From Adineta vaga (lineage: Eukaryota; Animalia; Rotifera): a stretch of DNA of 64,000 nt. The notes under the pieces were generated by a model. It was not told the DNA's origin and searched no databases. It worked only from the letters and a program-made list of their open reading frames with translations. The stretch lies in contig CP075494.1 in assembly GCA_021613535.1 (NCBI GenBank), forward strand, positions 16,740,001-16,804,000, given 5' to 3'. Position numbers and translations under genes: made by a program. The first letter of the stretch is position 1, and each line of letters opens with the position of its first letter. This document shows, one piece after another, positions 191-25,100 of this stretch.

Positions 191-1520
191 CCCAGGTCAA
201 CGAATCCGATGTCGGATCCGACAGAATCCTATAGGACTCCTGGTGACGGAATCGAATAGGAATCCGACTGTCAGAATCCACTACACTTCCGATAATATCG
301 GATGAATTAAAAAAAATCTGAAAACACCTAATTTCTTTGTATTTTTTCGGATTCAAAATCCTTTAATTATTCACCTGATATCTATCTCGTAGGATTTTTC
401 TGGATTGTTTTTCGATTTAAAATCCTTCACTTGTATTTCGTATATGCTCGAGTAGAGTATGATTCGTTTGGACTGATTTAGCATGGAATGCTGATTATGT
501 AGATTGTATAGTGGTTTAAGGAAGGGATAGAGGAAACGGATCCGTGGAGAAATGTGATTTTTTTCCGGCTCTCAGAATCATAGGAGATGAAATATATGAA
601 AGAATGCCAATGTCAAAGTTCTTTCGTGGAGAATTAATCGAGTGTTTCGGTGGAAACTGAACATTTTTCGGGAGATATAGTTGGAAATGTGAGTTGATGT
701 TTGCGTTTCTTTTGGTTATGTCGTTCTGAGTTGTTGGGGATACCTAGTAGTGTTAATTATTTTCATAAGCAGTATTTGTACATCGTTAGGTAGTGTCGCC
801 TTGGCGAAAGCACGAAGCTGGCAGTTATATTAGCAAAGCAACCCAGGAATATTCCGGACAGTTCCAGCTAGTTCCAAAAGCTTCCAACCGGAAAACTCAG
901 GACAATGGAAGCAGTATTCCGATCGGAATTTCTCGGACTGTTCCGGTGAATTCCAGTCGGAATGTTCTGGTTCCGGCGGGATCTGGCTCGGATTTTTCGA
1001 CCTGGGTAAATGTTTTCAGGTTGTTAAGATGGTGGATGCCGCAGATTTTTATGGATCATACTTTATGATGGAGTTAGGAGGTATGAAATTAAAAAAACGG
1101 TCTGCTTAAAATGTGAATGGTTCGAAACTATGTATTTCAGTAGGCGTTAGGTAAAATATATTCATGAATAGCGTCAAATAGTTTAAATATCGTTTTTCAG
1201 GTTCATCTAATGCATTTTTTTGGTTGTTTATAATATTCATTTTAAGATCCATGTCGGAGTTCGTTGAATTTTGTCAGAGTGTGGTGGAAATCGTTCGAAG
1301 TCATGGGTTCACAGTAATAGGATCCGATCGGTTCCTTGATACTGGATACCATCGGACATAGTTAATATTAACCGATAGGATTCGTTGATCCGAAGGATTT
1401 CAATGCGATTCCGTCACCGAGAATCCAATTAAATCCTATAGGAACCCACAGAATCCGGTAAAATCCTATGCTTTCCGATCGGATCCGATCCGATTCGAGT
1501 ATGGGATTGGTCAACCTGGG
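191..1520. mobile_element. Non-autonomous TIR DNA element (CCCAGG...CCTGGG ends, CMC/EnSpm-like) with GGATCC/GAATCC-rich subterminal repeats
   Basis: Left end cccaggtcaacgaatccgat (191) matches the reverse complement of right end atgggattggtcaacctggg (1520). Many short ggatcc/gaatcc/atcgga repeats near both ends. No coding capacity. Superfamily is inferred from the CCC...GGG ends only. Confidence 0.65.
842..1006. mobile_element. Small related MITE nested in the 191-1520 element
   Basis: Starts cccagg (842), ends cctggg (1006), rich in ttccgg/ccggaa repeats. A related ttccg/cggaa-rich stretch starts at tcccag near 10915. Confidence 0.5.
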
Positions 1521-1637
1521 TTGCATCATATTACTTTTACGTGATACCATACTCGTTAATCAACCTTTTAGATATAAGCAACATTTTCCTTATCAAGAAA
1601 TTCTCATTTTCTATATTGTATATATACACCTTCTTGT

Positions 1638-1672: not shown

Positions 1673-1788
1673 AGATCCTAAAAATTATACTGACTGAAAT
1701 TGGTCAATGTCCACAAATGTCGTTTACGGTTTTTGATTAAAAATCTCTGTTTTTTTATTTCAGATAATATTTGTTATAACTATTTGAT

Positions 1789-3574
1789 ATGTTTCGTCAT
1801 GTTTACAATCGCGTTCGTTTCAACTATTTATCTGCAATCATCGACCAGCAACTATCATACTATGGTAAGACCTACTGTATAGCTTTCTGTGTGCAAAACT
1901 TCTGTTATCTCATTGAGAAACTAATTAATTAGCAACGCCACCTCGAGGAGAATGCTATAGTGTAGATCAATGGGTTTCTTTGTTTGATCGTCTCGAGTTG
2001 AAACAACGCTAATATGTTTGTGGATAACGTTCTGTTATGAATATATGAGTGGCGTGCTAAAAAAACAGTAAAATAATTACAAGAATCTGATGTCTAGCCG
2101 AAAATTGACGGAATCAAATTTTTGCAACATTCTGATACTGAAAAGCAATGACATAATCATGCTTCGGGTAAAAAATATTTCCAATACGAGATCTATCGAA
2201 TAGTTGTATGTTTGCACCTTCGTTTTTGTTGCGTTTTTAGGTGGAGCCTCTACCAGTATACTGCCGTCACTACCACTGTCAACAGTTTCTGTTGATCAAA
2301 CACGAAAGACTGACTCGATTAGAGAACAACTTCGTCAAAATATGCAAATATATTTCGAGTCTTTTGCTACGGGAAAAGGCGCTATCGAATTGCTTTCGTT
2401 AGCGCATCCACATCGAATTAATATCCATCTCGATAACAATGACTACTTGCATTTATCCTTCGATCCAGAATTAGTTGTTTCTGATGCACATATAGTTGGT
2501 GCCCCACAACATTATTCCAAAAATCCGAAAAATGGCCCTTCAAAACTCATCAAATCAGAAGGAGACAGTGCCCATCCAATGCAGGGATCAGATAACATCA
2601 TGTCAGGAATGTTTTTACAAAAGGGTTGTCTACAAGACCAAGTGTCTGACTTGCTAGCGAAACAAATACTTGGAAAAGAAAGTGTGTATTTAGCTCAAAG
2701 TGGATATGCCGCTAACTACGGTCTACTTCAAACAATAGTTATCCCGGCAACGAGCCACGTCTATATTGATACAGCTGCTCATGAATCACTTTGGCAAGGT
2801 GCCCAGCGTGGTGTTATTCACAAGATTAAACATAATTCTCTAGAAGATCTTGAACAAAATCTTCGTAGGTTTGGTAGTGGAATCATTGTTGTCGATTCTC
2901 TTTACTCAGCGAAAGGCTCGATTGCCAATCTGGTGCAATTATGTAATCTCAAGGAACGGTACGACTGCATTTTGGTGGTTGATGAATCTCATTCAATTGG
3001 ATTGTACGGACCTCACGGTCGTGGCCTTGCAGCAATGGCAAATGTAACAGATCGTATTGACTTTATTACAGGTAGTCTGGCTAAGGCATATTGTGTTCGT
3101 GCAGGATTTATTGCCGGTCGCACTCAAGATGTATTATACGTGCGAGAAAAATCATCACAGTCGATATTTAGTAGTGCACTTATGACTTGGGATTTGCAAC
3201 GTCTTCGTCGTGCTATTGCAATCATTTATAATGCAGATAGTAAGCGTAAACGATTAATGGATATTGCAACAGTTGTACGACACGCTGCAGTGAACTTGAA
3301 ATTTGATGTTGAACAACCACCATTTCCAAGTCCCATTCTATGTTTAATCGGTGGGCCAAATGCACTTTCGAAAAAACTTCAAATTTGCTTCGAGAACGCA
3401 GGAATTTCAGGTGCCATATTCATAGCACCTGCTACACCCGCTACTCGATCTATCTTGAGACTCACAATGCATGCTGGTTTGTCGAATGAGGACGTCGCAC
3501 GAATAATCAGTACACTCGAATCCACTGCCCGATATCATCGTGCTAACCTTTCGCAAACATTTTTAAAGCATTAA
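1789..3574 (+). CDS. CqsA/LqsA-like PLP-dependent alpha-hydroxyketone autoinducer synthase (aminotransferase class II, AONS-like); two exons, 1789-1864 and 2241-3574
   Basis: Motifs NDYL, MSGMFL, QSGYAANYGLLQTI, VYIDTAAHESLWQGA, GSGIIVVDSLYS, VDESHSIG and ITGSLAKAY (PLP lysine) match recalled Vibrio CqsA motifs (SGWNANVGLLQTI, VYIDFFAHMSLWEGA, GPGIIVVDSIYS, MTASLAKTF). Donor g|gtaaga at 1864 and acceptor tttttag|g at 2240 are both phase 1, giving MFRHVYNRVRFNYLSAIIDQQLSYY-GGAST... Confidence 0.8.
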
Positions 3575-4434
3575 TCTCCAAATATGATTAAGATCTTTAT
3601 GTTTTTAGTGAAGGAACAAATGAAACAGTTCTTGACTATGAAGTATTTCATATTTATTTAAATTTTGTTAAACAAACTAACAATATTCTTACGACGCACA
3701 TGTGTAAATGCTTATTTTTTATTGTAAAAACTACGAAATATGTGATACTTTCCTTAGTGATAAATAAATATCTCGGGTTTCTTTTCGTTCTTTTCTTTTA
3801 TTGATTTTACTTGTAAGAGAAATACATTAAATTTCATGACGTTCTGTTTCTTTTCTCATTCTCTCTTTTTTTTTCTCTTATCAAATGTTACACGAGATTG
3901 ACAAAATGTTCTTATTTAATTTTTCAAACTTATCTAAAACATTGACGACATAGAAAACTGTAGTATTATCATGAGTTGCCTAGTTCGAATTATAATATAA
4001 ATGCATATTTAGCTAAATAATATCACTTCGAAAATAAATGACAAAACTTGAACTAGATTGTTTCTATAAGACAGGAACACTTTTTCTTCTATCTATAGGT
4101 AATTATAACTCACGTAGAGCATATTTCTGTTAAAATAGGAATAGGTAGGAATAGTTTTATTTCAGTTGCTATTGAATACGATACAAAAATATACACATAT
4201 ATATCTCTATTTATGAATTTTATTTACTGGAAACAAAAGCTAAATCTTTATCTATCAACGATTATGTCTATAAACGCTTTTACAAAATCATCATTTATAT
4301 TCGAAGTCGAATTAGGCAGCTACTCCCTTTTTCAGTTATGTTTACTTATAGATGAAAAAAATTATAATCGTTGGATCCAGTTTGATTTACAACGATCATT
4401 TTTCATATCAACAAAAATGTAAGCATCACTAATT

Positions 4435-5720
4435 CTACACAATATGGGTTTCGGACTGATTGCCAGCATCACTAAGATCTCTTTTGTAATGTTTGTAGAG
4501 ATAACTCATAGTTTGAATCATGCAAAGTTCATTAATATTCTGTCTAATGATACGTAGAATAACAAAACCATCTAAACCTATATAATCAATAAAACGACTT
4601 TCTATCGAGCTCTTCTTTTCGATCATCAATTTTGTTTCAAAATGTTCACACATTTGCAAGCATTGATTAATGAATCTTTTTCGATTCTTCTTTGTCAATA
4701 AAATAATCCATAAAATAGTGGAAAGCATATTCGCAATACTTAGAATAATCAACCACATTGTAAGTCCAAAGAAGATTATTTCATTATAAATATTAATTGG
4801 CAAATTGCATTGAACAGCATACCAATGTTGATTGGAACCTAATTCGCGAATCATAAAATCACACAACACAACATGAGGAAATCGGACAGACTCATAGGCA
4901 TGCACTCGATCTCCGAATAATTGGCCAATTATATTACTATCAAGATCAGTGTGTCGTAAAGAAAGAAAATTGATTAAAAATAGCAGTTGACCCAGTGTAT
5001 TCATGATATAAAAGAACTTGACTATGAATAATAACGGTGTTAGTCGACCAATAGGATTTAGAACTCGAAATTTGAGACGAGGAAGAGTGCGTGAACGTAT
5101 GTTGCTGGTCATATCCAGTTGTGCTTTGATTAATCGGAAAGCATGATCGAGTTCTTTTCTGTTACAACGATCTTTTTTGATCATTTTGATCAAATTTTTC
5201 AGATTTACACCTCTTTGAGATGAAAAAGTTTGCCATGCATGACTTGGTGATGTAAATAGAAAAGCCATCAGCAGAAGAGTTATTGTCGTCCATTGGTAAT
5301 AAGATCTAGATTGGTGGCATGAGAATATGGTGACCTAGTTTCAATCAACTATCTACTTACACGACATACGTTCGTGGTACGGATCTATCAGGAATTTCAA
5401 CTAGAACAACAATAGTTGTGACGAATGATGACTAAGAATGCGACAAAACGTACTGTCCTTAGTTGGTAAATAATAAGTTCCCTTGAGCCAACAAATACTA
5501 TTGATATAAGTAAAATGGATATTCTGAAATTGTGCTATATAGTAGATGAAGAACGAGCAACTATCGATTAGAAAATATGTATGATTTCCAAAACTTACTT
5601 GGTCCCCAACAATTAATTGGATTTCCTACATAAATTTTCCCCAATACAATCAGGAAACAACCGAGCAATGCCAATGTAGTATATCGACTGTTTAATCGAT
5701 CAATAACATCGGCATCAACC
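4435..5720 (-). CDS. Innexin (gap junction/pannexin family), multi-exon; first exon not resolved
   Basis: DVIDRLNSRYT...YVGNPINCW, YINSICW, SYYQW, FPHVVLCDF and QCNLPINIYNEIIF are innexin signature motifs, split by ~55-65 bp GT-AG introns. Confidence 0.92.
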
Positions 5721-6479
5721 TGGAAGAGTGACTTATAAATAAAGAGTGTTTCTATTTCAATCTTCATCTAATGATCAGTGGTTGTATGTGCACGTCCGAA
5801 AAGACAATTTGATGTACTTAACAATTGTATTTTATTCGTTCGTTACGTCTCTCTATTGATTGTTCTTTTTAACATACCAATATATTTATTTCTATTTGCT
5901 CTCTCTATAATTATACATCGTACTTGACAAAGTAATGTTAGATGTGCAAATATTGTACTGATTGATGACATTATCAAATGATATTTGAAATTTAATTTCA
6001 AACATAGTTCTCACTTCGTACGCTCTAATAGAACCGTTCTGAATTCTATTAAATAATAGTCATCATGTCATAGACTTGAATATGTGGCTTTGTTCATGCA
6101 GTCGTTATACTTTTGTCTCGTTGCAACAATCGAAAGTAGTTTTCTGATAAACTATTCACAATTCGATTAAGAGCATCTTCCATAGCTTACCTTACGATTT
6201 TGGAATCTTGGTTTTAATTTTCTGCTAGATAATGACTCAAAATAACTCTTTGAATACCGGCGACACATATATGTGTGTAAACATGGCTTACCGAATATGG
6301 CTTTTCAATTAAACAAACAAAAGAATCCAATGAAGATTAAGAGAGTGAGAGTGATAAATACCAGCGAAAAAAGCAAATAAAGTAAAAATAACTGTCTTAG
6401 TAGATATAAGAAAACATATTGTACAAGAAAAGGACCAGAGATACGATGAATTTGGTCTAAATTGATATAATGGATGATA

Positions 6480-7663: not shown

Positions 7664-8656
7664 ATGGATACTTATAATGGTTGGTCATTAAGACGTACAA
7701 TTTATGTTGGTATACTAATGGTCTCTATCCTATGTAATTTTTATTATCCTATAAAAACTCGTTTTATTTCTTTGAAAGAACAACATTTTCTTGAAAGTTC
7801 AAAATCACGTGATTGTAATATTGATAGATTACTTTTAGAAAAATGTTCCGAATTAGATTTTGTTACATTACGAACATATCGACGTTTATCATCAAATAAA
7901 AATGCAATTTATGTTCATGGAACTCGTATTATTAATTTAGGTGAAAATTATTTTATTAGTGTTGATGATATTTTATTTGGTTATGATATTTTATTTGAAA
8001 AAGATTATTTATATAGTATGGGATCATGGTTAGGTGTACAATTTCAATCAAGTCCTCATGATGCGATAGTTTTTCAACAATTAATTTGGAAAATAAAACC
8101 TGATTTAATAATTGATTTAGGAACAAATGTTGGTGGTTCAGCTGTATTTTTTGCTTCGATCATGTCATTTTATAGTGATGTTGGTATTGTTCTTACAATT
8201 GATCGTAAATCATTTACAAAAAATTGGGTACCAAATAAAAATTTATTATGTAAAGATTGTGTTAATCCAATTGATCATAAATTATGGAAAAAATATGTTC
8301 ATTTTATTCAAGGAACTACAATCGATCCTCAAGTATTAAATAAAGTTAAAAATTATGTATTAAATGCTACAACAATATTTATTAGTCAAGATGCTGCTCA
8401 CGATGGTCCTTCAGTTTATCAAGATATATTAAATTATGCTGAATTTGTAAGTATTAATTCATATATGGTAATACAAGATACAAAATTGGATCGAATTAAT
8501 GAATATTCTGTTGGTCCATTAGCTGCTGTAAGAAAATTCATGGATTATCAAAACAAAAATGTAGAAAATTTAACATATAGATTTGAAGTAGATCGTTCAG
8601 TAGAAGTATTTTATTATTCACAACATGCATATGGTTGGTTAAAACGAGTTAAATAA
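7664..8656 (+). CDS. CmcI / cephalosporin hydroxylase family SAM-dependent methyltransferase (rhamnosyl O-methyltransferase-like) with N-terminal membrane anchor; intronless
   Basis: SWLGVQFQSSPHDAIVFQQLIWKIKPDLIIDLGTNVGGSAVFFA, VLTID, FIQGTT, QDAAH, YMVIQDT and GPLAAVRKF follow the CmcI pattern. Hydrophobic segment at about aa 13-29. Confidence 0.85.
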   Translation: MDTYNGWSLRRTIYVGILMVSILCNFYYPIKTRFISLKEQHFLESSKSRDCNIDRLLLEKCSELDFVTLRTYRRLSSNKNAIYVHGTRIINLGENYFISVDDILFGYDILFEKDYLYSMGSWLGVQFQSSPHDAIVFQQLIWKIKPDLIIDLGTNVGGSAVFFASIMSFYSDVGIVLTIDRKSFTKNWVPNKNLLCKDCVNPIDHKLWKKYVHFIQGTTIDPQVLNKVKNYVLNATTIFISQDAAHDGPSVYQDILNYAEFVSINSYMVIQDTKLDRINEYSVGPLAAVRKFMDYQNKNVENLTYRFEVDRSVEVFYYSQHAYGWLKRVK

Positions 8657-11410: not shown

Positions 11411-11492
11411 CAAATGTTCTATAATAGTATCTGTTTGTTAATTTCGATAGTGATTTGCACTGAGTTCAGTAGAATTTTCACTTCTTTTTTAG

Positions 11493-14400
11493 TGTCGCAT
11501 CTTCTACGACGAATTCGAGAATGGTTAAACAAGTTTGGAGAGTTTGTTCAAGTTTACAATCTCTTTAAATCTGTGCCACCTGCAGCCAATGAACATAATC
11601 TACAAAATCAACGAATTTCAACAAGAATATTCATCATCTTATTGATATTATTCTTAATAGTTCTTTTCGTGTATAATTCGCTAATTGTTATTACGCATAA
11701 GAAGGAAATGGACGATCCTACTTTCGATGAATATTTAACATTGCATTTACGATATTCCGATAGTCTCACATGTCCATGCACAAAACCATCGATTGATCAC
11801 ATTAGATTCTTTAATATTGATTATATATTACACCAGCTATGCAGTAGTATATTTTCATCAAGAGAATGGTTTTCTGATATCCCTATGTATGAGTATTCGA
11901 CAGAGCTAACAAAAGAGGACCTTCGATTCATTGCTTACCACCAATTTCATGCGCTAGAAGCATTTTGTCGAATGGCAAATCAAACAATATTGAACAGTTT
12001 GACTCAATTCTACTCAGATCAATATATTAGCGCAGCTGTCATTCCGTCACACTTATTTACTGTAGAAACACAGTTCTTGATTAATCAGTTCAAAACATCA
12101 ACAAAATTAATTTTTTTTCTTTTGTTTAATATGATACGGCAAACTACTCAAGCCAATGGTTTATTTTCTGGAAGACGAACGAATTATCATCTAAACATAC
12201 GAGCGAATAATTCTTGTATCAACCTACGAACTTGTCCCGGTGAGATCGAAGTGTATCCACAATGGTATGATAGTTGCAAGTGTGATTATTCCATGAAATG
12301 TACTAGTGAAGCACGCCTCATTAGAGATCAACATCAGCGAATGATATTCTATGCACCAGGTCTATTAGCCGGATGTTATGTTATTGAAGCAACTTTACAA
12401 TCAAATCTTCAATGCTTCTATAATCAAACATGTATCGAGCAAATTTTCTCATATCTACAAGTTGAAACACCAATAAATGGAACACATCTTGATTCATCAT
12501 TACCTAGTCGATTCTCTGTTAATTCAACAATTGAACAACTTCTCAATGAACTAATGATAGAACAATGGAACATATCAACTACATATGAAAATTATTATAA
12601 TGAATGTCGACCGAAACAATGTATATATACATATAAGACAAGGAATGATGTGATATTCGTTATTACTGCATTGCTTGGATTAGTGGGTGGTTTGACTACA
12701 GTTTTGAGACTGATTGTGCCAATTTCAGTTAAATTTATTAGAAGAAAAACAAGAGCACAAGCAATAGAACATGGTAAAATGATCATCTCAGGACGCTAAG
12801 AAAATTTTTCACGGAGAAAATAATCTTCGCTTTCGATTTCAAAATGAGCATAGAAACAAATAAATGTATGGGTGGAAAACCAGAGGGTGTGAATGAAAGT
12901 GAAGTGGTAATTAGGTAGTTTGATTTTGCCACAGAGCTTTTTAAAAATTCAATTGATAATTAACTTTAGACTGGGAAAAAAAGAAGAATATAAAATGTAA
13001 CTAATGCACAAGAAACATGTGTAGATTCACCAAGTATTCGGCACTACACGCCGTGCCTTGTGCGAGTAGTATTAGTGATATTAATCAAATATAAGTATAG
13101 GGATCACTGATAATAAAACACGATTTGAAAGATAGTGTTGAAATACATATAAGGATAAGAATTTGGACGCTGTTCCTCACAGGTCGTGCTCGACAGACTA
13201 TGTACTTTGTCTACCCTCCCACCTGTGAAACAGACTATGACTAAGTAAGAAATAAACAATCAGCGACAAGTACTTAATTGAAAAACTGTAGATATTTGGT
13301 TTATAGTTTATATAAAAGATATTTTGAAAAACTTCTTGGATTATCTAGTAGCAAAACACTAACCAAGAGCGTAGTTTCTACATTTGGCTTTTAAAAAGCG
13401 CAATTTCGGTTACAATGTCAATAAAACCTGAATTAGATTCGGTTTTATAGAAATTGTATTATTTTTCTTGAGATTGAAATCAGACGCTGAATGTTTTTAT
13501 AAAATAAATTCTGCTCATACTTGATTGTTTTATTATTTGTCTATACATTTTTCTATTCCAGAAAGTGAAACTAACACGATGCAAACCGATTTATTTGTAC
13601 AAATCAGAAATCATCTCTTCACATTGAACTTATTTCCATCATTTCCACCTTCTGTCAACGAATACGATCTTCAAAACGAACGAATCTCAACAAGAATATT
13701 TATCATAATATTTATTCTTTCATTATCAATTCTTCTCTTCTACTATTCATTAATAAATGTCACAAGTATCATCAACAAAGAAAACCCTTCATTCAAGGAA
13801 TATTCACAACTTTATGAAGCACATTCTCAAACTCTCACATGTCCATGTATAAAAGTATCAATACAATACAAAGAATTTCTTGAAGTTAGTTACACATTGC
13901 ATCAACTGTGCACTAGTGTATTTATAACTGAAGAATGGTTTAAATATCTTTCATATCGATCTCAAGATAATTATATTCATCCCGATGACTTTCGATGGAT
14001 AGGTCAGGCAATATTTGAATCATTACATACATTTTGTCAAATGTCAAATCAAACAATCTCAGATAGTTTGAGTCAATTCTATTTAAATCAATATATTAGT
14101 ACAAGTGTTGTATCATTAGAGTTATTTACACTGCAAACTAAATCATTCTTGGATCATTCGAGAAGTGAAGGAAAAACAAATTTTTTTCTTACACTCGATC
14201 TCATACAAAATATAACTGAAGCTAACTATCTTTTATCAGCAAGAAAAACTAATTACTACTTTTATCATCGCTATGCTGCATTTGATTTTGTGCTTAAAGA
14301 CTCTAATGAAACCTGTACTGATCCTGTTGAACGCAATTTCAAGAAGCCAGTGTCTATTTATGATTATCCTAATCATGCGACACTATTTGAGATACCTGGT

Positions 14401-16608
14401 TTATTAATAGGATGTTATGTTATTGAAGCAACTTTACAATCAAATCTTCAATGCTTCTATAATCAAACATGTATCGAGCAAATTTTCTCATATCTACAAG
14501 TTGAAACACCAATAAATGGAACACATCTTGATTCATCATTACCTAGTCGATTCTCTGTTAATTCAACAGTTGAACAACTTCTCAATGAACTAATGATAGA
14601 ACAATGGAACATATCAACTACATATGAAAATTATTATAATGAATGTCGACCGAAACAATGTATATATACATATAAGACAAGGAATGATGTGATATTCGTT
14701 ATTACTGCATTGCTTGGATTAGTGGGTGGTTTGACTACAGTTTTGAGACTGATTGTGCCAATTTCAGTTAAATTTATTAGAAGAAAAACAAGAGCACAAC
14801 AACAACGAGACGTATCGACAATCGAAACGCGTAAGATACACAAATAGTATTGAGTATTTTAGATCAATAATGAATCATAAATGCTACGTTATGATGGTCT
14901 TGTAGAGGTTATATGTGACAGAATAATACTCTGTTCTCTTAAATGAATCTCGTTTTAGCATATCTACCTAGGTCAACCAATCATTTTTGTCAATCAAAAG
15001 ATTCTAACATGTAACATATTCATCTACAAATTCTATTGTAAAAACGAAAAATCATAAGACAATAATTAGATAGTTCTAACTTTGGTAAAAATATTGAAAA
15101 CAGCAATGACGATGCAGATGAGAATGCAAGAGTGAGTGTGAAGGAGGTTTAAGCCTTCAAACTTTACTGTTTTCAATATGTTTGTCTGTTTTTCATTTTC
15201 GGTATTAGTTGTTAGTTGGAAGAATCATAGGGAGCAAAAAATCCCATAGTATTGCAATAAAAAGTGTAGTTATTTAATTGTTGATTTAGAAGTTTAGAGA
15301 AATACATTCATAATTGCTTTTCTTTGTATTTAAGAAATTAATGATCAAAGACGATTCCAAATCTATTTAAATAAAGTAGTACATTTCATTCACAATTTCA
15401 ATTTGTTTTCATCAGTTCCACCTTCGATCGACGAATACGATCTTCGAAACGAACGAATCTCAACAAGAATATTTATCATCTTATTTGTCTTTTCATTAAC
15501 AATTCTTCTCTCCTATTATTCATTAATTAATGTTACAATTACCATCAGTAAAGAAAAACCTACATTCGATGAATATTTACAACTTTATGAAGCACATTCT
15601 CAAACTCTTATATGTTCATGTATAAAAGTATCAATACTATATAAAGAATTTCTTGAAGTTAATTATACATTACATCAACTGTGTAGTAGTACATTTGTAA
15701 CTGAAGAATGGTTTACATATCTTGCTAAAATTTATTTGTATCAGAATATATATAAAGATGACTTTCTTTATATGGGTTCGTCAACATTTCAAGCGTTGAA
15801 TACACTGTGCCAAATGGTAAATCGAACAATCTCAAATCGCTTAACTGAATTATATTCACATGAATATCTTAGTGCAATTTTGACATCATCAAATATATTT
15901 TCATCAACTTTTGAATCATTACTTGGTCAATTAAGATCATTAATAACACATAATTTTCTTCTTTCTTTTGATATAATACGAAATACAACAACTATTAATG
16001 CTCTCATGTCAGCATTTCAATCAAATTATCAGTTTAACAGGAACAGTGACTTAACTATATTTCCGACGACTCATTATGCTTGCTCGTGTCACGACACAAT
16101 AAAATGTGTCGTACCCTTTCCTGTCAAGAGTCATCCCATGGCACCTACAGCATTTTTTATACCAAATTTCTTTACTGGGTGCTACGTTATCGAAGCACTT
16201 CTTCAGTCGAGTCTTGAATGTTTCTTTGATGAAACATGTATCAGTGAAATACAAAAATATATAACATATACTTTACCAATGAATGTAACAGCTCTTGATC
16301 CTTTATTACCGAGTGAATACTCTGTCGATTCAGCAATACAAGATATTCTCAATCAATTAATGATTGAACAGTGGAATCATTCTGTTACATATGAGAAGTA
16401 TTACAATCATTGTCAACCAAAACAATGCACATATGTTTATGAGACGAATAATGGTGCAGTTGCGATTATTACTATATTATTTGGATTAGTTGGTGGTTTA
16501 TTAACTATTTTAAGTCACGTTGTGCCACGATCGGTGAAAACTATAGCATGGATAGTAAGAAGACGGAGAAGAATAATAGTTCAAGAGATATCCACTATTC
16601 AGACTTAA
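11493..16608 (+). CDS. Multi-pass membrane protein of three tandem ~425-aa repeat exons (11493-12773, 13562-14830, 15335-16608); 5' exon(s) apparently missing
   Basis: The three ORFs are paralogous (NERISTRIFIILF-TM, LTCPC, YTLHQLCSS, GCYVIEA.LQS.L.CF, EQWN, C.PKQC.Y-TM). Acceptors at 11492, 13561 and 15334 and donors at 12773 and 14830 are all phase 1 and join in frame. Confidence 0.8.
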
Positions 16609-17166: not shown

Positions 17167-18416
17167 TTATTTATTCAGTATATCAACAATTTTTGTTAAT
17201 ATTGGTTCAAAGCGATTGTTAGCAGCTGTTATTGTTCCTTCCATTCGATTCATCACATAAGCAAAGGAGAGATTGTATGATGGTGCAGCCAAACCAACAC
17301 TTCCGCCTGCTCCTATAATAATACAAAAATATAAATTTTAGCAAATCTATGAAAAATGTAAATATTTATGTTACCAAAATGACCAAAACTTCCTGATCCT
17401 AATTTAGGAAACGTTTTATCAAGAAGCATAAAACCCATACCAAATGATGAATGTGTTTGTGAAACAAGATCTAATTCACCATCTGGTGTATTCGATTTTG
17501 TTGCTAATTTCATAATATCTTCATTTAAAATTCGTTGATACTTTCCATTATCAACATCACCAATTAATAACGAATAGAATCGTGCAATTGACCAAGCATT
17601 CGATATGCCATTTCCAGCCGGTATTTCTGCTTGATGTGAACGAACATCATTAAAGAAATTCATGGCAGAATTTAATGATTCATCATTGAAATGTTGAGAT
17701 AGTTGACTAAATTCGTGTGGTGATACACGATATTCTTTGGTTGATGGTAAACCAATATAAAATTCAAGATTTGATGAAGATGAAATTTCATCGTAAATAA
17801 ATTGTCCAAGTGACCGTTTCTTTGGATCAACACGTCGAATAAGTTCACCAGCAAGCCAGCCATAAGTAAGTGAATGGTAACTATGAGCAGAACCTGGTAT
17901 CCAAGATGGTGATTGTTCTTCCAATATGTTTATCATTGTTGTCCAATTGAGATATTGTTCAAATGGAACTGAAACATCAGGTAATCCAGCACGATGAGAA
18001 AGAATATCGCTTACAAGTGTATTTTCTTTTCCATTTTGTCCATATTCAGGCCAATAGTCAGTGACTAGTGCTGAATAATTGAGTAGACCACGTTGAACAG
18101 CAAGTGCTACAGCTCCAGCGACAATTCCTTTTGTTGTTGAAAAGACTAATTGTAATGTTGCGTTATCATAAGGTTTTGTTCGTGACTGATCAAACCATCC
18201 ACCAGATAGACCAACGACTAATTGACCTTGATGATACACTGCTATTGATGCTCCTAAATCTCGATCTTCAATAAAATTATTTTCAAACAAATCATAGATA
18301 CTCTCCCAACCAGGCGTAATAGTTCCACGAATATTATAATCAATATTTTTAGTATAACTAGTCACTATTGAAGCAAGAATAAAGATCAAAAGATGTATTG
18401 TTCGATGATAACTCAT
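17167..18416 (-). CDS. Secreted beta-lactamase-family serine hydrolase (EstB/class C-like); one intron near 17294-17372
   Basis: Signal peptide, FSTTK (SxxK), ILSHRAGL, HSYHSLTYGWL, PAGNGISNA, and FGHF-G joined by a GT-AG intron to GAGGSVGLAAPSYNLSFAYVMN...ILNK*. Confidence 0.88.
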
Positions 18417-22144: not shown

Positions 22145-25100
22145 ATGAATACAAACGATCATCAAGTTGAAAAATATGTTTTAATGTGGAATGATCCAAC
22201 GGTGAATTCAACAGAAGAAATTCGAAAAGCACAACAAAGTTTAGTTAAAAATTTTAATCAATTGAATACATACGAAACTGTTGATAAATGTAAAAATGCT
22301 ATTCGACAATTGTCCACAACTAGTCGAGTTATTCTTATTATTAGTGGAACATTTGGTAAAGAATTAGTTCCACGTATTCATGATTTACAAAATATTATCA
22401 ATTTATGTTTTTTGTTTTCAACGAGATAAATATATACAATGGGCAAAAGAGTACAACAAAGTAAAAGAATAAATTTGTAATTGATTCTTTTCAAACCTTT
22501 TCTTTTTTTCTTCTTTATAGATCAAAGCAATTATTGTTGATATACAAAAACTTATTTCAACTATTCAATTCGATTATGAACAACAATTTAATCTAAAATT
22601 AAGTGAGTTAATAAAGAAAAAATACAATATTTTTCATCCTTTTAATTCTTATTTTTGTTTTTTAGCAAATAAAATATTCCACATATAAACGAAAATTTAT
22701 TACTTGAAAATATTTTGAAGAATTCAGATCGATCTCTTCGTCGTTGTTTAATATCTCTTCTTAGTAAACGTAATTCTATACCAATGATTCAATCTTCATA
22801 TAATTCTTTAAATAATGAATATTATTTAATATCTGATATTATTTATGTATGGGATTATTATCGACCTATATTACTTTCATTTGATATTGGTCAATGTAAA
22901 AATAAAATTATATCAATAAATAATTTATTTGGTACCAATTTCGAAAAATCTATTAACAATATTTCAACTACTATCAATGTTGATTTTGGTTATTATTTTG
23001 ATGAACGACGTCCTGTTAATATAGCAATTACTTATGGACAAATTTCTCATAAAACTTTGATTGAAATATCAATGTTATTTAATGGTTTTATTATTCATAT
23101 TGATCAAATATATTTATGTTCAAATCAATTAAATGTTATTAATTATCTAAAATTATTTTCTAAACAAAAATATATTCTCATATTAATTCATCATAACAAC
23201 GATGAAATTGATGATCAAACAGAATTAATTATTAAAAATATAAATGAAATTTATTCTAATTATCAAATTGATTATTTATTAAATGATCAGGAGAATAAAG
23301 AACAAATTGATGAAGTACGAGAAAAACTCTTTCATAATGCAATTCAACTACAAAGCTTTGATGAGAAAACAACTCAAGAATATCTTAAAAAATTAATGAA
23401 TAAAAATGAAAAAGATTTTATTGAACAAGATGAAGATTTTATTAATTCTATTCGATCTATTCTTATTGATGGTAAAAAGGATAATTATTTATTATATTCT
23501 TTGTTTACAGATTTATGTAAGAAAAAATTGAAAGTGAATCAAATGGATCGATATGGAGATGATATGAAATGTGATATATTGTATAAACTTCATCTAGAAT
23601 TATTTTCTACAGAAACAGAATTCAAAAAACAACAAGATATTGATTCACGTATATATAGTCCTGGATTTGAAATGTTTTTCAATTTACTTCAAGAACCAAA
23701 ATCACGATTAGCGAAATTAAATCTATTATCAATGGAATTGAAAAAAGAAGCAATTCAAAAATTGAAAGATAAAAAAACTTTACAATTTTATGAACAATTA
23801 TCAATTGAAATTCATTGGCGTAATGTAATTATTAATTCAAATAATTTAACTAATATTGATCAACAAATACTTATTACATCATATCGAGATTATATTATCG
23901 AAGGAAATCCATTTGAAATAATTGATGGAGATAATTTTGAAATGCAAGATACATTTTTAAATAAAGTATTTCAATTATTTCAAGATAAAAAATTTTTTAT
24001 TATTACGACAATTGGACCAGAGAATAGTGGTAAAAGTACATTATTAAATTTCTTATTTGGTACTTTATTTGAAACACGCGATGGAAGATGTACAAAGGGG
24101 TAAAAATTAAAAGAATTTTTATTTTAATATTTAACTATTTTTTGTGTACTCAAAAAGTGAGGATACTATAAAAATCGGTCAGTGTATCCGTTCGGCCATC
24201 CGTTTACACGATAACTTCTCAGAGACTAATGAAATTCTCATGAAATTTTGTACACAGCATTAACTCATCAATATCTCAGTCGAGTTCGAAGATGAGCTCA
24301 GCCGATTGTACTATTGTTGACTTACAGAAAAATTTCCCAATATCTCTACATATAAAGTAGTATGTTTGTCTGCCTGTTCGCTAGCCATTCAGTCCCTGTA
24401 ATAGCTAAGATCACCAAACTCTCCATGGTACTTTCCTAGGTCTACAAAAAGGTTGAGAGAGTATTGGCATACGAATAGGGAGTAGGGAGGGCTGACCTGA
24501 GTGAAATTTCACCCATGTAGTTCTGTGGGTTATAATGTCACACCCACTTTTTATAGTGCTTACCTAGGTCTAGAGAAAGGTCACAATGTGGTTGGCATCA
24601 TCAGGATGAGTGTGATGAATCAGTAAAAAAGAGTCACATGCTCATATTTGTCCTTGCTTTGCACTTTCTCCTTATTCTGTATTCAATTCTTATAATCCTT
24701 TGTCTTTTTCTCTTTCAAAAGGGTATATAAGTGACTGTTTTGTTTGAGAACGATACGATATATGATATGAAGAAATAAAGGAAAGTGTGGCTTCATCAGC
24801 GCTAAAGCCTCTTCTATCAAAAAACATAATTTCTTTTAATTTGAATGTCTCAGATGAATATAATCTAGGTATCAACAACATGTTATTGACAGCATATTTG
24901 AAACCTCATACTTTTTCGAGCATACGGGAAAAGTGAGCGCATTACTATAATCAATATTGATATTTACATTCATGCGTTCGTTTACACGACAACTCTTAAA
25001 AGGCTAATCCAATTGTGGTGAAATTTTGTACAGAGTCTTCTTTCATCAATATCTCGCTCGAGTTCGAAGATGAGCCTGATTGGGTAAGCCGATGTTGAGT

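Follow-up and report, generated by a model that had tools for sequence, protein, structure and literature searches.

We analysed a stretch of 64,000 nucleotides (the window) that derives from chromosome 5 of Adineta vaga (16,930,519 bp) and corresponds to C5:16,740,001-16,804,000. The gene described here lies ~0.19 Mb from the end of this chromosome (Table 1). Its two exons, when joined, exactly match the NCBI protein I4U23_027270 (469 aa, Adineta vaga, annotated as hypothetical), and the translation of exon 2 is 100% identical to that protein. A sequence-only reading of the locus had proposed an intact open reading frame with motifs of the autoinducer synthase CqsA, a spliceosomal intron and a neighbouring innexin gene. 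All three are borne out. The motifs GLLQTI, HESLWQGA, GSGIIVVDSLYS and SLAK are all present; contigs of the RNA-like runs X1 and X16, which come from different studies, skip exactly the 376 nt between the GT and the AG; and the innexin gene next door is itself spliced. The intron is retained in a contig of the DNA-like run X14, and the 3′ half of the gene is covered by a contig from a third study. The gene is thus expressed in cultured animals in several studies, with run types ('RNA-like', 'DNA-like') being predicted labels and the assembled contigs carrying no expression level.

Table 1. Coordinates of the synthase gene, its surroundings in the window and related loci elsewhere
Feature	Position	Strand	Remarks
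Dispersed repeat	1019..1521	.	Upstream of synthase gene; many copies genome-wide
Splice-acceptor-like site	1750..1763	+	25 nt 5′ of ATG; putative spliced-leader acceptor or 5′-UTR intron
Exon 1	1789..1864	+	76 nt = 25 codons + 1 nt, phase 1; basic acid-free amphipathic peptide
Spliceosomal intron	1865..2240	+	376 nt, GT..AG, phase 1; absent from RNA-like contigs
Exon 2	2241..3574, including stop	+	Low-confidence linker, then complete CqsA-family alpha-oxoamine synthase (fold type I PLP)
His206, PLP-stacking histidine	2780..2782	+	His137 in 393-aa Vibrio numbering; site list PMC8301110
Lys307, Schiff-base lysine	3083..3085	+	Aligned with V. cholerae CqsA Lys236 (PMC9516700)
3′ UTR	3575..3858	+	RNA-like contig coverage; contig ends 3697, 3775, 3858
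MITE-like dispersed repeat	3968..4325	.	44-nt imperfect inverted ends; between synthase gene and innexin
Innexin (animal gene)	4435..5767	-	Pfam 4e-36; spliced
Rhamnosyl O-methyltransferase/CmcI-family ORF	7664-8656	+	Intronless; GC3 7%; candidate foreign gene
Three related tandem ORFs	11414-16608	+	401-461 aa; two scanned, no Pfam match
Beta-lactamase-fold (serine hydrolase) ORF	17313-18416	-	Signal-peptide-like start
URGCP/very-large-GTPase-like gene	22715-28696	+	Across several ORFs
Second A. vaga copy of synthase gene	L013:5228-6941 = C5 ~663.2-664.9 kb		NCBI model I4U23_022092
PTS1-bearing CqsA-family genes, giant-virus-like contigs	L015:2207-3523; L023:2663-3805; L108:648-1799		At least two different kinds of contig

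The spliced X1 contig terminates at position 1762, on the AG of the acceptor-like site upstream of the ATG, and an acceptor-like AG at the same distance from the ATG was found at four of six bdelloid-type loci. The position of this AG together with the end of the contig fits either spliced-leader addition or an intron in the 5′ UTR; in bdelloids, a spliced leader is trans-spliced onto more than half of transcripts (PMC1925144). On the other side of the gene, the innexin region (4326-6400) is duplicated at 98% identity ~42 kb upstream (C5:16,702,213-16,704,283), and the edge of the MITE-like repeat marks where the duplicate starts.

Databases were searched with the exon-2 translation, while the full NCBI protein entered the alignments (two of which served as search profiles), the trees, one family scan and the fold model. 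The protein matches Aminotran_1_2 in Pfam, and its best match in NCBIfam is PRK07179/NF005526 (alpha-hydroxyketone autoinducer synthase; 321.7 bits, 5e-96), followed at a distance by BioF (161.2 bits, 3e-47). With 321 bits, the full protein is under the NF005526 cut-off of 428; the scanned bdelloid, fungal and viral relatives scored 312-356 bits, and two bacterial members of the same phylogenetic branch, P0124 and P0278, exceeded the cut-off (446 and 432 bits). A sequence search of the PDB gave 4e-56 for CqsA as against 2e-28 for SPT, and Foldseek with the predicted model (pLDDT 83.8) returned CqsA in all of the top six matches, with a TM-score of 0.88 (by target) to 3hqt. The cut-offs of BioF, KBL, SPT and ALAS were not reached, and the protein did not group with these enzymes in trees. 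NCBIfam, PDB, Foldseek and phylogeny thus agree with the earlier proposal of a CqsA-family enzyme rather than one of the BioF, KBL or SPT type. The latter enzymes and ALAS share the fold and the general chemistry with the rotifer protein, but are only 24-27% identical to it, carry other motifs and form an outgroup with 100/100 support.

The core residues of alpha-oxoamine synthases (H206, D273, H276, K307 and R432) are conserved in 15 of 15 bdelloid sequences, and the wider set of PLP-binding and catalytic residues (N92, S179, G180, H206, D244, D273, H276, S304, K307 and R432) in all or nearly all of them. Also kept are Q178, S245, Y247, S275, R312, F419 and A423-T424, which are CqsA-type and mostly absent from BioF, KBL and SPT, as well as the family-typical motifs SQSG, D-S-x-Y-S, DESHS, SLxK-x4-R and F-x-x-PAT. 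The protein is very likely an active alpha-oxoamine synthase. Several residues of the pocket, as listed in a homology-model paper on Vibrio CqsA (PMC8301110), differ, however (Vibrio CqsA>rotifer: W113>Y181, F134>T203, M138>E207, F261>E328, P265>Q332 and C350>I420), so the substrates may differ too. The change M138>E207 is nearly bdelloid-specific; F419, P422, A423, I334 and F335-S337 are retained. V. cholerae CqsA (PDB 2WK7/2WK8/3HQT), the top match in every library, resembles the rotifer enzyme in fold, in the PLP lysine, the PLP pocket and family residues, but is only ~33% identical to it. The rotifer enzyme, in addition, has an extra N-terminal exon resembling a presequence and a ~35-residue low-confidence insertion.

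A second copy with 79% identity and the same exon 1 and intron is present in A. vaga at C5:663.6 kb; its NCBI model begins within the intron and so omits the conserved exon 1. An ohnolog origin of this copy was rejected, as both copies lie on chromosome 5. Homologs with 55-80% identity were found in A. ricciae and A. steineri, several copies being present in these other Adineta, and on metagenome contigs. Two of the latter carry animal neighbours (GPCR, arrestin, ApoL) and are presumably bdelloid; the named matches of the protein search included no Rotaria or Didymodactylos proteins. The arrangement of an ATG, a GT donor 76 nt later and an in-frame acceptor downstream is shared by five bdelloid-type loci, with even the most divergent, L018, among them. 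The dN/dS of exon 2 was 0.31 between the A. vaga paralogs, 0.20 in comparison with A. ricciae and 0.09-0.28 in distant pairs, whose dS approaches saturation (0.13-0.31 for the gene itself; 0.09-0.31 overall, six loci). The gene is under purifying selection, and is a domesticated, spliced foreign gene of the CqsA family with two copies in A. vaga. Since foreign genes make up ~11.5% of Adineta gene sets (PMC11258130), one more such gene is ordinary. Two aberrant models, an A. ricciae one with an internal duplication (P0002) and one with leucine-rich repeats fused to a fragment of the synthase (P0127), are probably artefacts of assembly or annotation.

We compared the gene with its homologs in a tree of 56 sequences (LG+C20+F+G4), from which fragments, fusions and near-duplicates were excluded and which was rooted on BioF/KBL/SPT-like proteins, with no ALAS among them. 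The bdelloid-type sequences were monophyletic (100/100), and their sister was the pair P0021 and P0123 (100/98; 37-41% identity). Together with fungal sequences, further unassigned contigs and five sequences of bacterial or presumably bacterial origin, they formed a branch (99/97) that was sister (93/86) to the canonical group of Vibrio, Legionella, Oxalobacteraceae, Chlorobium and Streptomyces. A larger quick tree placed the branch inside the CqsA family, nested with weak support. Placement of the bdelloid sequences with the canonical Vibrio/Legionella/Oxalobacteraceae synthases was rejected by the AU test (p=0.0004). The gene is, then, no close orthologue of CqsA, LqsA or JqsA, but belongs to a separate branch of their family. 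The kinship with these synthases expected by the sequence-only reading thus stood at the level of the family, with BioF, KBL and SPT excluded, and failed at the level of the canonical clade. The label 'bacterial' fits only the remote origin: the nearest sequences are found on one giant-virus-like and one unassigned contig, in fungi and in uncultured bacteria.

The sister gene P0021 (contig L015) is intronless and lies among F-box and ankyrin-repeat genes. In IMG/VR, matches to the ankyrin family of this contig were limited to an 847-kb and a 314-kb contig of one sample. The 314-kb contig encodes both RPB1 and RPB2, RPB2 with an intein, and a second L015 gene has a match at 2e-20 on the 847-kb contig. 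The band-7 neighbour of a further branch member, P0125, is 57-58% identical to genes of viral contigs of 1,021,348 bp and 1,259,197 bp, and P0139/P0366 is surrounded by densely packed genes with few Pfam matches and 30% GC. Because their neighbour genes match large viral contigs, a giant-virus origin of L015 and L023 is well supported; that of L108 is suggested. None of these three short contigs carries giant-virus hallmark genes itself, and weak Atlas matches for the neighbours of P0123 and P0021 were excluded from the evidence. IMG/VR scans returned no member of the branch, BFVD contained no CqsA-like match above 20% identity, and GTDB and JGI scans added one branch member, besides 162 loci of the canonical type. 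Fungal members in NCBI come from Orbilia (KAK6344236), Drechslerella, Emericellopsis, Aspergillus cavernicola (KAL2818230), Mortierella and Neoconidiobolus (KAI9292565).

Several other homologs deserve mention in their own right. P0144, P0152, P0157, P0280, P0303 and P0330 are from scattered fungi, among them Neoconidiobolus and the nematode-trapping Orbiliaceae, and mostly carry a peroxisomal signal (PTS1); we found no paper on these fungal enzymes. A branch member ending in SRL (P0126, L072:212-1468) comes from a Gammaproteobacteria MAG, where its contig is 2.6 kb long, and may be misbinned. A contig that looks phage-like by eye (L131:5366-6499, IMGVR_UViG_3300025769_014894; DNA polymerase-like and thymidylate-synthase-like ORFs) carries a distant CqsA-family gene of the P0178 cluster, possibly a phage-encoded autoinducer synthase. 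The P0122/P0132 pair comprises metagenome fusions, one of two tandem oxoamine-synthase domains (802 aa) and one of a large membrane-transporter-like protein with a CqsA domain (1195 aa).

The branch members differ in their targeting signals. A canonical C-terminal PTS1 was present in 12 of the branch's 15 complete sequences of viral, fungal or unassigned origin (13 of 16 if one sequence chosen for its PTS1 is included), in none of 180 other, mostly bacterial homologs from two word-index searches, in none of the 162 further canonical-type loci and in 0 of 15 bdelloid sequences. As the PTS1-bearing sequences are related by descent, a Fisher p-value overstates this contrast, which is still clear. 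Conversely, the first 18 residues were free of Asp and Glu in 9 of 10 bdelloid N-termini, in 26 of the 180 comparison sequences and in none of the PTS1 group; those of bdelloids contain 2-3 Arg/Lys and have a hydrophobic moment of 0.49-0.72, and the one Asp of the Adineta N-terminal peptides is at position 19. No PTS2 motif was seen by eye in the N-termini. Judged solely by composition, the peptide encoded by exon 1 appears to resemble a mitochondrial presequence, and given this N-terminus and the lack of PTS1 the bdelloid copies probably work in mitochondria. Acyl-CoAs of beta-oxidation are found in both mitochondria and peroxisomes, which would suit an enzyme needing medium-chain acyl-CoA. 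The fungal homologs and those on L015, L023 and L108 share with the rotifer enzyme the branch and the Y181 and E328 signatures, but most have PTS1 (SKL/AKL/ARL) at the C-terminus and no N-terminal extension.

How the gene reached bdelloids is evenly balanced. There is about an even chance that its source was a eukaryote, either a protist or a fungus, or else a bacterium that passed it on directly, and that the viral copies were picked up independently from a shared pool of hosts and did not act as a vector. Sister groups do not tell which way a gene moved, viruses do acquire host genes, the contig of P0123 has no assignment, and protists are poorly sampled. AU tests rejected the grouping of bdelloids with the fungal clade (p=0.03) and with the branch's own bacteria (p=0.02), which is modest evidence because the groups were chosen after inspection of the tree. 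Against a non-viral source, the closest sequences are intronless and PTS1-bearing, the contig of one of them has genes matching the 847-kb and RPB1- and RPB2-encoding 314-kb viral contigs, and no protist homolog closer than P0021/P0123 was found.

As to function, we consider it somewhat probable that the gene encodes an organellar CqsA-family alpha-oxoamine synthase, an old horizontal acquisition, that makes an aminoketone lipid as a secondary metabolite. In Vibrio, CqsA forms a PLP-SAM aldimine, from which MTA is eliminated before attack on decanoyl-CoA and decarboxylation give Ea-CAI-1, and other steps convert this to CAI-1 (PMC10491745, PMC9516700). The rotifer enzyme, presumably a PLP-dependent dimer like its family, would by analogy condense a fatty acyl-CoA with SAM in a decarboxylative Claisen-type reaction that frees MTA and gives an Ea-CAI-1-type enaminoketone. 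SAM would be the substrate with slightly better than even chances; alternatively, a small amino acid would serve as co-substrate and yield an alpha-aminoketone lipid. The product would not necessarily be CAI-1 or LAI-1 itself, and as a secondary metabolite it would most likely target microbes or cells of the animal itself. Both LAI-1 and CAI-1 influence the migration of eukaryotic cells (PMC5289986), LAI-1 through Cdc42; such a lipid would thus also be of use to viruses or fungi.

The product could instead be a true quorum mimic, as the sequence-only reading had suggested, with released molecules resembling Ea-CAI-1, CAI-1 or LAI-1 being read by bacterial sensors of the CqsS, LqsS or JqsS type and steering food or gut bacteria. 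CqsA-type residues are retained, the bacterial branch members P0124 and P0278 score above the family cut-off, and cross-talk exists, as cqsA as well as lqsA can partly stand in for Janthinobacterium jqsA (PMC3566124). Yet jqsA does not make up for the cqsA mutation in V. cholerae (PMC3566124), so the same family need not mean the same signal, and the rotifer enzyme stands outside the canonical clade and has an altered substrate pocket. Legionella LqsA and Janthinobacterium JqsA belong to the same family, but the rotifer enzyme is 31-37% identical to their homologs and not their sister, and their genes are in operons with sensor kinases. Those of the branch's bacterial genes whose surroundings were examined adjoin minE/minD plus a fatty-acid cluster or, in an integrase island, a GerE regulator, and no sensor kinase adjoins them in the DNA examined (for L022, 328 nt upstream only). 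Nor was a partner resembling Vibrio CqsS found in the A. vaga genome with the single presumed sensor-kinase query used, taken from a cqsA-type locus; HATPase_c had only three weak matches there, and no sensor kinase is next to the synthase gene in the window. We therefore regard quorum mimicry as unlikely, and equally unlikely a product that bacterial CqsS-type sensors could read.

Rather unlikely, too, is a role confined to internal metabolism, in which the enzyme would make short sphingoid-like or other aminoketone lipids, or serve as a sink for surplus organellar acyl-CoA, with no microbe-directed role. The organelle signals throughout the branch suggest coupling to beta-oxidation, and expression in cultured animals across several studies would fit. 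Giant viruses carry sphingolipid enzymes, and BFVD indeed gave SPT-like and S1P-lyase-like viral matches. However, A. vaga still has ordinary SPT-like genes of its own, and a patchy distribution with repeated duplication near chromosome ends is more typical of accessory chemistry (PMC11258130). Bacterial contamination or a decaying pseudogene, which the GC content of the gene (41%, above the 26-33% of adjoining genes) might suggest, has practically no chance, being refuted by the spliced contigs, a dN/dS well below 1, the context of a 16.9-Mb chromosome and orthologs in three Adineta species and on metagenome contigs with animal context, in line with what the sequence-only reading had concluded from the locus.

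The secondary-metabolite synthase that we favour would have a precedent in the NRPS and PKS genes of bdelloids (PMC11258130), which are likewise foreign, intron-bearing, expressed biosynthetic genes of the same animals. Unlike these, the rotifer synthase would be a single-enzyme pathway, and its closest kin are partly viral. A more far-reaching scenario, that a giant virus brought a peroxisome-targeted synthase to the bdelloid ancestor, where it was retargeted to mitochondria, and that the whole branch makes CAI-1/LAI-1-like lipids acting on bacterial quorum sensing or eukaryotic cells, we regard as quite doubtful.

The enzyme family itself is known; what this analysis adds is the expression of the gene, its branch of viral and fungal sequences and the contrast in targeting. 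We found no paper dealing with animal, fungal or giant-virus members of the CqsA family in a search that had most subscription journals outside its reach. CqsA and autoinducer terms are absent from the text of PMC11258130 and those of its supplements that were examined, and CqsA from the portions covered of the supplements of two A. vaga transcriptome papers, in which other gene ids are used.

Alpha-hydroxyketone synthases have been treated as bacterial. The family, however, has a eukaryote-adapted branch with organelle signals, found in an animal, in several fungal lineages and in giant-virus-like DNA. As single enzymes open to direct assay, the members of this branch are candidate makers of quorum-type lipids in eukaryotes. 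The branch further lends itself to testing whether giant viruses carried the many foreign genes of bdelloids, and whether targeting signals change upon domestication.
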